From sequence record NC_019526.1: DNA of 64,000 bases. The stretch is one strand, 5' to 3'. Position 1 is the stretch's first letter, and each line of letters begins with the position of its first letter. The position numbers and the translations under genes are program-made. Below, one piece after another: positions 13,760 to 32,956 of the stretch. A model generated the notes under the pieces. The model was not told where the DNA came from. It saw only the letters and a program-made list of their open reading frames with translations, and searched no databases.

Positions 13760-14032
13760 ATGAAATTAATTAAAAATATTTTATTCTTTTTTATTTTTAG
13801 TATATGTATTACAAATAATGTATATGCCATACAAATGAATTGTGTCAATGTACAGGACAATAAATTTTGCACAAGTACAGATGAAAATGGTAATACAGTA
13901 CGTACCAACATTTATCGTTTTGGTAATATAGAAACCATCGAATCATCCGGTACTGATTCTAATGGTAATACTTTTATCAACAAGTGTACTGTAATAAAAT
14001 TGGATAATTATAGTACTATTAACTGCAATTAG
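13760..14032 (+). CDS. small putative exported protein
   Basis: N-terminal MKLIK + hydrophobic stretch ending VYA; paired cysteines in the mature part. Confidence 0.65.
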   Translation: MKLIKNILFFFIFSICITNNVYAIQMNCVNVQDNKFCTSTDENGNTVRTNIYRFGNIETIESSGTDSNGNTFINKCTVIKLDNYSTINCN

Positions 14033-14041
14033 GGTGATATT

Positions 14042-14416
14042 ATGTCATTTAAAAGAGATAGAGAATATATCGACACAATAATAAAAATTATAAAACAATT
14101 AAAAAGTCAAAATTCTGATCTAGGAACTTCAATATACAATGAATATTGCTCTTTTGGTTATTTGTGTTATAATTACAATGAACCAACATTGACTTATTTT
14201 TATGATAAAAAAGATAAAGATTTCGAAAAGTTTTCTACTACACTTGAAGTACCTTCATATGATATCAGTACAGAAGAAGGTTATTTTCAGGCATCTTTGA
14301 TGTATACAGATTCACAAATGCGAGTAATGTTTTTATTTGTTGAATTGAAAAAGAATTTTAAAAATGATTCATTTGTTATTCCCATGAAGTTACTAAATGA
14401 TAATTTAATATATTAA
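14042..14416 (+). CDS. family A protein
   Basis: ISTEEGYFQASLMY. Confidence 0.8.
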   Translation: MSFKRDREYIDTIIKIIKQLKSQNSDLGTSIYNEYCSFGYLCYNYNEPTLTYFYDKKDKDFEKFSTTLEVPSYDISTEEGYFQASLMYTDSQMRVMFLFVELKKNFKNDSFVIPMKLLNDNLIY

Positions 14417-14421
14417 AGGAT

Positions 14422-14820
14422 ATGTTTCTTATGTCTGAATTTGAAAAAATTATTAAACGTTGTGAAATATATTTTTATCATATTATAAAGAATATAGGAA
14501 AAACAAAAAAATCTACAGTTATAAATTGTGAATACAAAGATAATGGATTTATTTGTTATACACCAGAAAATAATGAATGTTATTTTTATTTCCCAGATCC
14601 AGAATTTGGTTCTTCTGGTATAAAAACAGAAATACCAGATGATGTTCTAACTGAAGAAGGTTATTTTCAGTACTCAACTATTTTTGATGATGAAAAATTA
14701 TTCAGTATGGTGTTAATGAAATATTTTAAAGATAATTGTGATTTTGGATTTTCTGTAGAGGCTCCTGATTGTCTTTTTGACTTCCTACAACGAACCGTAT
14801 ACAATGAAAATACTAACTGA
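14422..14820 (+). CDS. family A protein
   Basis: LTEEGYFQYSTIF. Confidence 0.8.
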   Translation: MFLMSEFEKIIKRCEIYFYHIIKNIGKTKKSTVINCEYKDNGFICYTPENNECYFYFPDPEFGSSGIKTEIPDDVLTEEGYFQYSTIFDDEKLFSMVLMKYFKDNCDFGFSVEAPDCLFDFLQRTVYNENTN

Positions 14821-30744: not shown

Positions 30745-31605
30745 ATGAAATTATATTTTTTATTTTCTTTTGCTGAAGATATGTATGGATTTGCAGAAGT
30801 TGCAGAAAGTGATGGAATCTCATCACATACCAGGCATCAAAAACACCCACATGAGTTTTATAATAATTTATTCATGTTTATGCAATATAAAATTTTCTCA
30901 TCTGAATTTGATAATTTAGATCACCCATGGGAATTACCTTTAATTGATATTCCAGACGAATACGTATTTCAGTTCATGTTAATGGGTCTGGAAGACTATG
31001 ACTTAGTTGTTTATAACTACAGAACTAAACGCATTATGCTTGGAACTCACGATAGTTCCATTGTATATGTTTCAAGTACCAATGATGAGTTAGCGTCTGA
31101 TGAAGGTAATTATAGAAAATCTTATGGTTATATAGAAAATGATAATGATTTTATTTTAGATTTTCGTGTATCAGAAGAAGAAAGAAGAAAAAGAGAAACT
31201 TATCAAGTGGAGTTAAAACCAGATAATGGTTATAATGAAATTTTGGAAGTACTTAAACCATACTACCTTGATATTGTTTATAAGAAATATAAACGCCTGT
31301 TAAATCATCTTAGCGAAAAAGAACCAATTGGTTTTGAAACCAATTCATTACGTAATAGCATCATATTTCCACCTAGAGTAATGAAATATGGCGAGGTTTC
31401 TAAACACAAGATGAAACTATATCCCGATGATATTGAAGTTCTATATCATTCGTGGTTGAATAATGATGAACTATATGTAGAAAATAAAAAGTTAATGCGT
31501 ATAAGTAATAATGATGATAGATTGCTACAAGCGTGGTATAATGATTCATATTCTGCATTTACTGACAGTAATTCTGAGTATTGGAAGAACACAGGACAAA
31601 AATAA
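30745..31605 (+). CDS. hypothetical protein with an N-proximal family A-like motif
   Basis: IPDEYVFQFMLMG at about residue 70 of 286. Confidence 0.7.
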   Translation: MKLYFLFSFAEDMYGFAEVAESDGISSHTRHQKHPHEFYNNLFMFMQYKIFSSEFDNLDHPWELPLIDIPDEYVFQFMLMGLEDYDLVVYNYRTKRIMLGTHDSSIVYVSSTNDELASDEGNYRKSYGYIENDNDFILDFRVSEEERRKRETYQVELKPDNGYNEILEVLKPYYLDIVYKKYKRLLNHLSEKEPIGFETNSLRNSIIFPPRVMKYGEVSKHKMKLYPDDIEVLYHSWLNNDELYVENKKLMRISNNDDRLLQAWYNDSYSAFTDSNSEYWKNTGQK

Positions 31606-31608
31606 ACC

Positions 31609-31636
31609 AAGGACGGCGTAAAAACCGTCCTTTTTT
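31609..31636 (+). terminator. intrinsic terminator
   Basis: AAGGACGG-cgtaaaaa-CCGTCCTT + TTTT. Confidence 0.85.
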
Positions 31637-31692
31637 AATACATAAATATCTGAACGAAAAATAGATTTAAGATATAATGTTTATAATTACAA

Positions 31693-32067
31693 GGATGTTG
31701 GATGCACAGGATGTGCATACACTAAAAACCTGATCCACTCGAAACAAGTAGAGGGCAGATGAGTATACCAACAATACGCCGTGTAGAGGATACCCGTTTA
31801 GGCGAGTCGACACGTTAAAGGGCAAAGGTAGCACGATTGCCCCAATCTCTCAGGAGATTGATAGGACGCGAATCCAGTTAAGTCTGGACATTAAGTGTAA
31901 AAGGGAGATTATTTTCTTTTAGATATTTTGGAAATAATCACAGTATTGAATTGCTTGAATAGTTCGGTACTGAAGTGCAAGTATGTTTAAACTTGTGACC
32001 GTTGCATGTGACTGCGATAAGGGGAAACCGGGCAACCCGCCTCTGCCTAATAAATTAAATTTATTAG
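31693..32067 (+). ncRNA. candidate structured non-coding RNA (~370 nt), family not recognised
   Basis: No ORF; GC-richer than its flanks; at least 8 stems, several with G-U pairs; TATAAT at 31682 upstream; 3' hairpin at 32047-32067. Confidence 0.55.
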
Positions 32068-32128
32068 AATTCGCAATTCAAGGAATTTCGACAGCTACGA
32101 GCTTCAAGGCTTAGCTTTTTATTTCTCT

Positions 32129-32330
32129 TCCCCTCCCTGTGGGGGGATGAAAATATCTCGTGCAAACGCCTTCAAGTATTGAAATTCACGAAGTGAATTG
32201 AAATTACTTGTTCTGTAGTCGAACGACAGTGAGACGTGAGAACAAGTAATTTCTGCATGTATCAACGAAGTGACAACGAGTTGATACATAGCACTTTAAA
32301 ACATTATTGAATTCAATAATTAATATTATT
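32129..32330. repeat. cluster of perfect inverted repeats (candidate origin/cruciform element)
   Basis: Stems 32171-83, 32183-99, 32200-14/32239-53 (15 bp), 32257-66/32280-89; palindrome 32303-20; ACGAAGTGA occurs twice. Confidence 0.7.
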
Positions 32331-32344
32331 ATGGTTTTAAAGAA

Positions 32345-32956
32345 ATGAATTTAGAAGAACAGAAAAAAATCGCTTCAAGAAAACAAAAGAAAGGAATTGA
32401 TATTAAGTACTTGAATAAGGAATTTCAAATAGTTCATAATCCAGATAGCTCTTTTTGTGGTTACAGAATACGAACAGAACAAAATACATTATCTAATATA
32501 AGCGAGTATGAAAATGGTACTGAAATAGGAATTATTAACTTCAGACCAACTCAAACACCAACAATACTCGGAGCTAGATATAAACAATATTTTGAAGAGA
32601 GATATGCCAATGGAAACATTTCTCTTCATTATACATTTTATAAAAGCGTACTAATTGGTGAATACAAGAAATATGATTCAGATGGGAATTTAACACTAAG
32701 AGAATTCTATGATGGAAATGGTGATTGTACTAAAGAAATAAAAGAATTCATTGGTTTTAATGGAACCGATGAGGAATTTATGCATTACGAATTTAAAGAA
32801 GATGAAGAATTTAATATATTAATGCGATATGGTTCTCACTTCAAATTAATAAAAGAAATAAAATTTAAAACAGAATATTTTAATTACGTATATGAAAATT
32901 GCCTCAAACGTGGCTATATACGCAATGATTTAAATAAAAAGAAATTCAAACACTGA
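32345..32956 (+). CDS. MORN-variant (YwqK-like) repeat protein
   Basis: EYENG...YANGNISLHYTFYKSVLIGEYKKYDSDGNLTLREFYDGNG repeats. Confidence 0.65.
   Translation: MNLEEQKKIASRKQKKGIDIKYLNKEFQIVHNPDSSFCGYRIRTEQNTLSNISEYENGTEIGIINFRPTQTPTILGARYKQYFEERYANGNISLHYTFYKSVLIGEYKKYDSDGNLTLREFYDGNGDCTKEIKEFIGFNGTDEEFMHYEFKEDEEFNILMRYGSHFKLIKEIKFKTEYFNYVYENCLKRGYIRNDLNKKKFKH

Follow-up and report, generated by a model that had tools for sequence, protein, structure and literature searches.

Large, intricately folded and deeply conserved RNAs are rare in bacteria and phages, and for RNase P, tmRNA and HEARO (the omega-RNA guide) the function, once solved, proved to be new biochemistry. The current study concerns a large structured RNA of the Klebsiella jumbo phage vB_KleM_RaK2 (hereafter RaK2; NC_019526, 345,809 bp), which lies between genes ORF445 and ORF446 in a 64,000-nucleotide stretch of record NC_019526.1, referred to below as the window (window position + 248000 = record position; window 31600-32350 matches record 279600-280350 with 100% identity), and the family of homologues to which this RNA belongs. 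In being large (approximately 0.5-0.8 kb), pseudoknot-rich, often phage- or prophage-borne and, here by prediction, independently transcribed, the family resembles ROOL (RF03087) and GOLLD (RF01998). These two differ in that their hosts are mostly Firmicutes and similar bacteria and in that they usually lie beside tRNA genes, whereas the present family is represented by several paralogues per genome.

Other described systems share individual features with this locus. The OLE RNA is presented, in two reports, as a highly conserved, structured RNA of approximately 600 nt whose function involves a membrane protein (PMC9723947, PMC12265935); the present RNA similarly occurs, on chromosomal islands, together with a conserved protein for which N-terminal membrane helices are predicted (p286 or a 257-aa relative), but OLE shows no sequence or model similarity to it and is chromosomal in extremophilic Bacillota, while p286 has no phage homologue. 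In both the lytic myovirus ICP1 and the PLE satellites that exploit it, ORF-less gaps give rise to large or abundant non-coding transcripts (PMC7567579); those RNAs were defined by RNA-seq and homology between phage and satellite is unreported for them, whereas the phage and island RNAs described here are homologous and known from sequence alone. In PA5oct, a jumbo phage related to RaK2 and 121Q, RNA-seq identified ncRNA002 and ncRNA004 (451 and 619 nt), again in ORF-less gaps (PMC7318152). Homology to these two RNAs was considered and rejected, as neither nhmmer nor the two covariance models built in this study (R1 and R2, below) gave a match. ColE1 RNA II and the T4 origin transcripts are likewise non-coding, approximately 0.5 kb long, driven by a sigma-70 promoter (predicted in our case) and independent of their neighbours, with several origins per genome in T4; they differ in being without a pseudoknotted fold rich in invariant nucleotides, while pairing is conserved throughout the present family.

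The original prediction for this gap, made from the window alone, had proposed an undescribed phage RNA of the ROOL/GOLLD kind. Rfam 15 (4227 families) was searched with Infernal cmscan at the gathering score and also in evalue mode. At the gathering score there was no match in the window or in ten homologous loci, including to ROOL, GOLLD, HEARO, OLE and raiA, and evalue mode gave scattered noise only (31500-32450 at E up to 10; an island copy at E up to 5), among which these five families were not listed. RNase P models did not match at E up to 10; group I and II introns had no Rfam match, and the genes on either side of the RNA are intact, with a stop or start codon of their own. ARAGORN detected no tRNA or tmRNA gene in the window and, across 38 loci, a single locus with tRNAs, more than 8 kb from the RNA. 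The prediction that tRNA, tmRNA, RNase P and introns would not match is thereby borne out, as is that of a large structured phage RNA lacking a described family, while membership of ROOL or GOLLD is not, given that there is neither a covariance-model match nor a tRNA neighbourhood. Size and phage association do recall ROOL and GOLLD, but in view of these negative searches a divergent member of a known family (RNase P RNA, tmRNA, group I or II intron, ROOL, GOLLD, HEARO or OLE) is extremely improbable. One look-alike was discarded: the segment ACGACCGUUGCA...ACAGAGCAACCCGC resembles ACGACCAGUGCAACAGAGAGCAAACCGCC, which we take to be part of E. coli M1 RNA, but no covariance model matches, and the segment forms a pseudoknot and a helix loop (PK2 and H10, below) rather than P11/J11-12. 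The open-access literature that was searched, which is not the whole literature, held no description of this RNA or of the islands. We rate the family as a new RNA class, with the caveat that large structured RNAs of unknown function already form a recognised category and that Rfam and the open-access literature are incomplete; on the strength of the covariation described below and of the Rfam negatives, the central claim of a large structured, probably undescribed, non-coding RNA in a jumbo phage is upheld.

Homologues, covariation and extent of the RNA

Sensitive BLASTN of the gap region against 50,697 phage records returned matches confined to jumbo phages of approximately 350 kb (58-71 records, two to five places each), namely the RaK2/121Q/PBECO4/GAP32/CBB/BF/Yen9-04/Munch/XaC1 group, the hosts of which are Escherichia, Klebsiella, Salmonella, Erwinia, Yersinia, Serratia, Cronobacter, Pectobacterium and 'Xanthomonas'. 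The comparison with related jumbo phages that accompanied the original prediction as a proposal thus found homologues in every RaK2-like phage checked. Further loci were fetched by scanning with a motif from the most conserved segment, the 3' core: IMG/VR yielded 48 matches (44 true and four GC-rich chance matches), metagenomes 65 (61 confirmed by nhmmer at E < 1e-5) and genome assemblies 11 (seven confirmed). More than 100 homologous loci were gathered in total, and removal of near-duplicates left 43 representatives less than 93% identical. Since loci were fetched by that motif, its invariance is partly built in; covariation elsewhere is unaffected.

The evidence for structure is comparative. 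RNAalifold predicted 72 pairs from nine sequences, 31 of them with compensatory double changes, and 67 pairs from 32 sequences, 41 with such changes, and an all-against-all column scan recovered the same helices together with crossing ones. Two covariance models were built, R1 for the 3' core (RaK2 31937-32108; 153 positions, 27 pairs) and R2 for the 5' domain (RaK2 31730-31906; 187 positions, 25 pairs). In the R1 alignment A5 (45 distinct sequences), 98.9% of cells are paired, compared to 81.0% when shuffled and 34-53% when the partners are slid; the corresponding values for the R2 alignment A7 are 97.6%, 75.0% and 31-41%. Covariation scores are 0.605 for R1 (0.246 shuffled) and 0.579 for R2 (0.154 shuffled), values reached by none of 500 shuffles in either case, and fall to at most 0.12 with slid partners. 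Compensatory changes affect 18 of the 27 pairs of R1 and 18 of the 25 of R2, i.e. 36 of the 52 modelled pairs. A bias towards pairing arises from fitting the alignments to the models; the slid controls and independent MAFFT alignments agree with the result. The absence of covariation among homologues had been named as grounds for abandoning the original prediction, and it is instead strong in both domains and in three pseudoknots.

The excess of G-U pairs, which had been read as a sign of structure at the RNA level, is also seen across the family: helix H7 holds 121 G-U against 21 A-C cells, and alignment A5 contains approximately 104 G-U cells against at most 13 unpaired ones. As G-U is frequent and A-C rare, the constraint acts on the RNA of the + strand and not on DNA hairpins. 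The copy in the window belongs to the family, with matches to R1 (31937-32108; 118.5 bits, E 7e-29) and R2 (31730-31906; 85 bits, E 7e-22) and with all three pseudoknots, PK0, PK1 and PK2, formable. Single-sequence folding gave z-scores of -3.0 on the + strand and -2.6 on the - strand; because these are weak and hardly separate the strands, the case is built on the comparative data and the z-scores are unused as evidence. Taken alone, the proposition that this gap specifies a structural RNA is, in our estimation, very probable.

An opposing view is that the gap encodes small proteins, as some database records annotate. ORFs of 33-56 aa do occur in it on both strands, and depositors have annotated some: in phage Muenster, a 43-aa ORF (gene 135, with a called ribosome-binding site) lies over the RNA (L002 2385-2516; L numbers denote collected loci), and the K64-1 RefSeq record carries five 'hypothetical proteins' over it (NC_027399 279405-280156). 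No reading frame is conserved, the best staying open for at least 40 codons in 29 of the 43 members, the substitutions in stems are compensatory, and the indels in loops are not multiples of three in the family alignments. The family alignment would therefore indicate that the small ORFs annotated over the RNA (RaK2 ORF245, Muenster gene 135 and those of K64-1) are probably spurious, and a protein-coding explanation of the gap is of virtually negligible probability.

The setting of the RNA in the window is as follows:

30745-31605, + strand: ORF445, the gene 5' of the gap
31609-31638, + strand: intrinsic terminator of ORF445 found by terminator scan (hairpin 31609-31632, then a T-run), outside the RNA unit
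32345-32956, + strand: ORF446, the gene 3' of the gap

The gap itself (31606-32344, 739 nt) is the sole stretch of at least 300 nt in the 64-kb window without an ORF of at least 60 aa on either strand, and it holds no annotation in the RaK2 record. The original prediction had described this ORF-free gap, a strong terminator at its start and an enrichment in GC, all of which were recovered, the GC content being 0.47 in the gap and approximately 0.30 in its flanks. It had placed the element at 31693-32067; a structured RNA is indeed present, but these bounds are too narrow, as conservation and an internal duplication in RaK2 delimit a unit of approximately 31671-32349. The terminator lies outside that unit, since homology between the two RaK2 copies begins only at 31671. 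The RNA may accordingly measure some 490-650 nt rather than 375, with a conserved core of approximately 490 nt (31685-32176) and approximately 650 nt if a 3' module is included.

Putative promoter, fold and 3' end

Stem support was judged across 32-46 homologues. The 5' part of the unit comprises the following features:

31670-31678, + strand: putative -10 element aGATATAAT (TATAAT at 31673-78), aligned with the family extended -10 TGnTATAAT
31696-701/31768-73, + strand: pseudoknot PK0 (UGUUGG with CCAACA in the H2 loop), supported by covariation
31702-31718, + strand: hairpin H0, 7 bp with a GGA loop, from the sequence
31729-31906, + strand: 5' domain, defined by the R2 match and pair counts
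31736-40/31751-55, + strand: H1, with a conserved loop GAAA(N)NGUA
within 31729-31906, + strand: invariant UGAG, listed between H1 and H2
31763-66/31774-77, + strand: H2, 5' domain
31780-84/31810-14, + strand: H3, 5' domain
within the 5' domain, + strand: H4, short
31820-25/31837-42, + strand: H5, 5' domain
31843-60 and 31873-88, + strand: RaK2-specific hairpins of the 5' domain
within the 5' domain, + strand: H6
31901-06, + strand: invariant AAGGGA, at the 3' end of the 5' domain

Upstream of the core, TGnTATAAT occurs in 31 of the 43 representatives and TATAAT in 37; at the aligned -10 position the second RaK2 copy reads TGATATAAT, and 31671 is the 5' edge of the unit duplicated in RaK2. Transcription would start at approximately 31685, with TATAAT at 31682-87 as an alternative -10 element. 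The original prediction had relied on the latter hexamer, which is present, and had placed the start near 31693; the start is moved to approximately 31685 because it is the TATAAT at 31673-78 that the family conserves as its -10 element. In one paralogue clade, promoter and core are separated by an additional hairpin and U-run. Two promoter candidates were dropped, namely TGGTATAAT just 5' of CCUGAUCC in the islands, as TGGTATAAT falls inside hairpin H0, and a TTGAC in the phages as a -35 box, as the TTGAC-type strand pairs with the H2 loop in PK0. PK0 occurs in at least ten sequence variants of 6-9 bp; in a swap test the median complementarity was 7.5 for cognate strands and 5.5 for swapped ones, and 4% of swaps reached 7.5. 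The position of H0 is taken in the family by hairpins of differing sequence (alignments A1 and A3).

The remainder of the conserved core is arranged as follows:

31907-16/31930-39, + strand: hairpin of a variable region, replaced by a differing, optional hairpin in other members
31941-53/31960-72, + strand: H7, 13 bp with four G-U pairs; covariation 0.72 (0.24 shuffled)
31954-60/32076-82, + strand: pseudoknot PK1 (H7 loop CUUGAAU with AUUCAAG), supported by covariation
31977-82/31991-96, + strand: H8, 3' core (31976-32108)
31997-32003, + strand: invariant GACCGUU, 3' core
32001-05/32032-36, + strand: pseudoknot PK2 (GUUGC with GCAAC in the H10 loop)
32013-17/32071-75, + strand: H9, 3' core
32020-24/32040-44, + strand: H10, with a conserved 15-nt loop, 3' core
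32047-/-32067, + strand: H11, 3' core
32093-96/32100-03, + strand: H12, 3' core

All seven pairs of PK1 show compensatory changes, with 99.7% of cells paired and at least four sequence versions, while PK2 is 100% paired and covaries at two positions (GC/AU and CG/UA). A closing helix of 5' CCUGAU with 3' GUCAG, predicted on nine sequences, was set aside, as it is unsupported by the island variant L069 and by RaK2. An approximately 18-nt motif (UACAAUAUAGAUCCGUC-like) was observed at two optional insertion points, one following AAGGGAG and the other within H11 (alignment A3 columns ~385-420 and ~565-590; e.g. L049, L073 and L130), and is perhaps a portable module that serves as a tertiary-contact or protein-binding element.

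The individual stems of the original prediction fared differently when set against this fold. Those at 31696-701/31768-73, 31820-25/31837-42, 31941-50/31963-72 and 31978-82/31991-95 have covariation support and correspond to PK0, H5, H7 (extended to 13 bp) and H8, respectively. Pairing of 31780-84 with 31810-14 was correctly drawn, as H3 covaries, but it is an ordinary nested helix and not the pseudoknot it had been labelled. The stems 31702-07/31713-18 (H0) and 31907-16/31930-39 are plausible but specific to the RaK2 lineage, the latter being identical in both RaK2 copies and hence uninformative for covariation. Also RaK2-specific are 31843-49/31854-60 and 31873-77/31884-88, which are compensated between the RaK2 copies (CAAUCUC/GAGAUUG vs AAGCUU/AGGCUU, and CCAG/CUGG vs CUGG/CCAG). 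Two further pairings were discarded as the partners are non-complementary in other members and the bases are otherwise engaged, those of 31777-80/31801-04 by H2 and H3 and those of the long-range pair 31753-59/32042-48 by H1; likewise, the region read as GNRA-type mini-hairpins (32020-39) forms H10 and PK2.

The second RaK2 copy (record ~191,312-191,994; L140 2730-3412) lies directly 3' of the sigma factor gene ORF244 and contains the annotated ORF245 (record 191634-191840). The copies align over 31671-32349, from the -10 element to the next start codon, with 85% identity over 699 nt, and form a mosaic: 31907-32018 and 32068-32349 are identical or nearly so, whereas divergence accompanied by compensatory changes is seen in the 5' third and in the H10-H11 segment, H10 for example being AGGGG/CCUCU in the window and GGACG/CGUUC in the second copy. 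This mosaic of identical blocks and compensated diverged blocks suggests gene conversion between the RaK2 paralogues under structural selection.

The 3' part of the unit, beyond H12, consists of:

32102-08 and 32170-76, + strand: direct repeat CUUCAAG, flanking the U-run, H13 and tail segment
within 32113-32179, + strand: conserved AAAAU...CAAAC tail, from the alignments
32116-25, + strand: U-rich linker after H12
32133-37/32142-46, + strand: H13, GC-rich with a tetraloop; U-G alternates with C-G
32180-32335, + strand: 3' module, kept in phage copies and in the chromosomal island
32183-89/32193-99, + strand: hairpin of the 3' module with a GAA loop
32200-13/32240-53, + strand: long hairpin of the 3' module with an apical CGAACG...GUGAG motif
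32258-67/32280-89, + strand: hairpin of the 3' module with a ACGAAGUGA-type loop
32303-32335, + strand: AT-rich hairpin and U-rich tail, possibly a weak terminator

The copies of the 6-8-nt direct repeat change in concert (CGUCAG in most members, CGACAA in L069, CUUCAAG in RaK2); a third, complementary partner with which they might co-vary was looked for and none was found. One helix of the 3' module has a covariation score of 0.72, with 20 G-U against 6 A-C cells. The 3' module also contains three CGAAG or ACGAAGUGA-type loops (32183-32199, 32220-32236 and 32266-32274). C-GAA-G closes very stable mini-hairpins in DNA, and these loops may function at the RNA level or in single-stranded DNA. 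From these features, transcripts of the unit could end at approximately 32125, 32180 or 32335.

Phage loci and chromosomal islands

The gaps that hold the phage copies are 600-840 nt each and occur at no fewer than four unrelated loci:

RaK2 and 121Q: between an ORF445-like gene and an ORF446-like gene, followed by dam
121Q, GAP32 and XaC1: element on the + strand, between EndoVII (- strand) and a small gene plus the baseplate hub gene (- strand)
CBB, BF, Yen9-04 and XbC2: between a gene of approximately 600 aa and an ADP-ribosylglycohydrolase gene
RaK2, second copy: immediately 3' of ORF244, the 'RNA polymerase sigma factor' gene

The genes downstream of the RNA are unrelated between loci: an ORF446-like gene, an ADP-ribosylglycohydrolase gene, small ORFs or no gene at all. 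Both neighbours at the EndoVII locus run antiparallel to the RNA. These unrelated loci, the antiparallel arrangement and the RaK2 duplication, which spans the -10 element to the next start codon, identify the RNA as an independent unit. They also bear on the idea that the RNA is a cis-acting 5' leader, a riboswitch or attenuator, for ORF446. At RaK2 and at the ADP-ribosylglycohydrolase loci the next gene is indeed co-directional with no strong terminator in between, and some copies have a hairpin and U-run before the core or after H12 that might serve as attenuators; against this stand the unrelated downstream genes, the opposite orientation of the EndoVII neighbours, an island RNA that converges on a repressor gene, and a size of at least 500 nt with three pseudoknots, which is far above that of known riboswitches. 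The leader class was for these reasons rejected, its probability being very low.

Three to four paralogue clades in the tree are common to several phage genera, from which it appears that the paralogues are old and diverged and have been kept across the RaK2/121Q/GAP32/CBB-type jumbo phages.

The seven matches in bacterial assemblies and many of those in metagenomes are chromosomal and not phage. In Enterobacter, Silvania, Serratia and E. coli the RNA is borne by integrative islands of approximately 10 kb, as a single copy in the island backbone. In E. chinensis 170198 (JARDVI010000005.1; L137 5909-16183), an element of approximately 10.5 kb is inserted in ppdD; its left flank reads yacG-zapD-coaE-guaC-hofC-hofB-ppdD. 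Next to this flank, a large serine recombinase and a cI-like S24 repressor are separated by a 1.3-kb gap that holds the RNA; an HTH_35 protein, p286 (286 aa, with N-terminal membrane helices), LprI and a 210-aa resolvase come next. The cargo consists of a 561-aa ADP-ribosylglycohydrolase, DarT and a UvrD-like helicase, after which a ppdD fragment, nadC and ampD follow; the DarT gene adjoins the ADP-ribosylglycohydrolase in place of the usual macrodomain DarG. Further loci of this type are L065, L077, L089, L093 and L131. The RNA-cI-HTH35-p286-LprI core recurs in Silvania, Buttiauxella and many metagenome contigs, with serine recombinases that are in some cases only 24-27% identical, and the RNA of the islands is convergent with the repressor gene.

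A variant island adjoins ffs in two of 5426 complete E. coli genomes. In LR-29-1 (NZ_AP027515.1) it lies between ffs and ybaA (L139 9959-20303), with the RNA, unannotated by PGAP, at ~14005-14455 and beyond; it has a tyrosine integrase disrupted by IS3, DUF4326/DUF488/dual-OB cargo, a 257-aa p286 relative (23% identity, E 7e-6) and a resolvase 74% identical to that of E. chinensis. The island backbone (RNA, p286-like membrane protein and resolvase) is thus conserved, while integrases and cargo vary. For p286 itself there was no Pfam or PHROG family and no informative atlas match. A protein partner common to phages and islands was sought and rejected, as phages contain no homologue of p286 and RaK2 ORF445, although also of 286 aa, is unrelated to it. 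Aligned over 99% of 741 nt, the island RNA and the XaC1 phage copy share 73% identity; the island RNA retains PK0 and the 3' module and is nested among the phage copies in the tree. On this comparison, one RNA family is common to lytic jumbo phages and to small islands with defence-type cargo in the same host range.

Such a distribution could be produced by a selfish or formerly mobile RNA element, i.e. an ORF-less ribozyme or a retroelement remnant for which the direct repeats would mark insertion or processing sites. Consistent with this, the RNA occupies differing loci in differing genomes and is placed by the islands beside integrases, a 6-8-nt direct repeat with copies that change together flanks the H13 segment, and the nesting of the island copies within phage diversity indicates horizontal transfer. 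On the other side, the paralogue clades retain orthology and synteny from one genus to another, a sign of old and stable loci and not of recent spread, no Rfam model of group I or II introns, HEARO or any ribozyme matches, no reverse transcriptase or nuclease gene adjoins the loci examined, and their flanks show no target-site pattern. We regard a mobile element as quite improbable.

The ADP-ribosylglycohydrolase gene directly follows the RNA in phage BF (L008 1802-2471) and in XbC2 (L009 1809-2499), and the phage enzyme belongs to the same PHROG, phrog_6572, as the DarT-paired enzyme of the island. The presence of this enzyme at RNA loci of both kinds may be a coincidence; alternatively, the phage enzyme beside the RNA could be a counter-measure to DarT-type defence.

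Proposed role

Our preferred interpretation, which we consider reasonably probable, is that of an independently transcribed, trans-acting structured RNA, made by the host polymerase and involved in host take-over or in conflict between phages and islands; within it, the biological role is the weak part. A stand-alone non-coding RNA gene in the gap, read from the + strand, would possess its own sigma-70-type promoter, without a -35 element and with an extended -10 TGnTATAAT. Unmodified host sigma-70 RNA polymerase would transcribe it, and hence probably early in infection. The RNA adopts a two-domain fold of at least 14 helices locked by the three pseudoknots PK0, PK1 and PK2; by virtue of this fold it would act in trans, as a component of a ribonucleoprotein, as a decoy or possibly as a ribozyme, with a part in host take-over or in the conflict between phages and homologue-carrying islands.

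Several observations weigh against this interpretation. In approximately half of the members, RaK2 not among them, a terminator-like hairpin precedes the U-run that comes after H12, midway through the unit, so that the tail and the 3' module may be missing from most transcripts or may have a separate, possibly DNA-level, role. At some loci there is no terminator between the unit and a co-directional downstream gene, which makes read-through into that gene possible. The RaK2 copies are the most divergent of the family, scoring 85 and 67 bits with R2 where other members score 130-190. What is said here of promoter use, transcript ends and timing is predicted from the DNA, and none of the tests that were run points to a protein partner, a ligand or catalysis.

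The main rival is an RNA-primed replication origin, in which the RNA would be a structured pre-primer comparable to ColE1 RNA II or to the R-loop transcripts of T4 oriF and oriG, the 3' hairpins would be single-strand initiation signals, the copies would represent multiple origins of the 346-kb genome and the rep-less island would replicate by the same means. A neighbour-independent transcript of approximately 0.5 kb from a presumptive sigma-70 promoter would suit such a function, as would the several copies per genome at scattered loci and the succession of a C4...G6 hairpin after the U-run and hairpins with CGAAG-type loops; furthermore, the islands carry a resolvase, and no initiator gene was recognised among the products scanned or listed, which do not represent every ORF. 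What speaks for the preferred reading instead is the RNA-level pairing along the full length, with abundant G-U, three pseudoknots and many invariant loop nucleotides, and to our knowledge known primer RNAs show nothing like such full-length conservation at the RNA level. In addition, old paralogue clades are kept across genera, which fits distinct RNA functions better than redundant origins, and PLSDB (72,556 plasmids, E up to 1e-3) contains no match to the RNA, on which ground a plasmid replicon of the ColE1 RNA II type was rejected. An origin function is consequently judged unlikely.

A more specific and tentative form of the trans-acting interpretation, which we consider possible but doubtful, is that the RNA is the shared interface between RaK2-like phages and islands that act as satellites or defence elements. 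The phage paralogues would then be required early in infection, as RNA subunits or ribozymes, and their partner would be either hijacked or poisoned by the island copy. If this is true, large RNAs would gain a new functional class, and a jumbo-phage RNA would for the first time be the key to a satellite or defence system.

The family, for which the comparative support is unusually clean, is kept as several old paralogues by a clade of approximately 350-kb phages that is under development for therapy against Klebsiella, E. coli and Salmonella, and the island homologue beside defence cargo (DarT and ADP-ribosylglycohydrolase) points to an unnoticed link between jumbo phages and islands. The R1 and R2 covariance models, or equivalents, would allow annotation of the RNA in place of spurious small ORFs, and the compact fold is a good candidate for cryo-electron microscopy.

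Elsewhere in the window, positions 2300-27000 contain at least ten paralogous small genes at a spacing of approximately 470-1070 nt, with repeat families D1-D8 and a common DNA motif that would encode roughly ...TEE..FQYSTLY...; this series looks like a tandemly expanded gene family.

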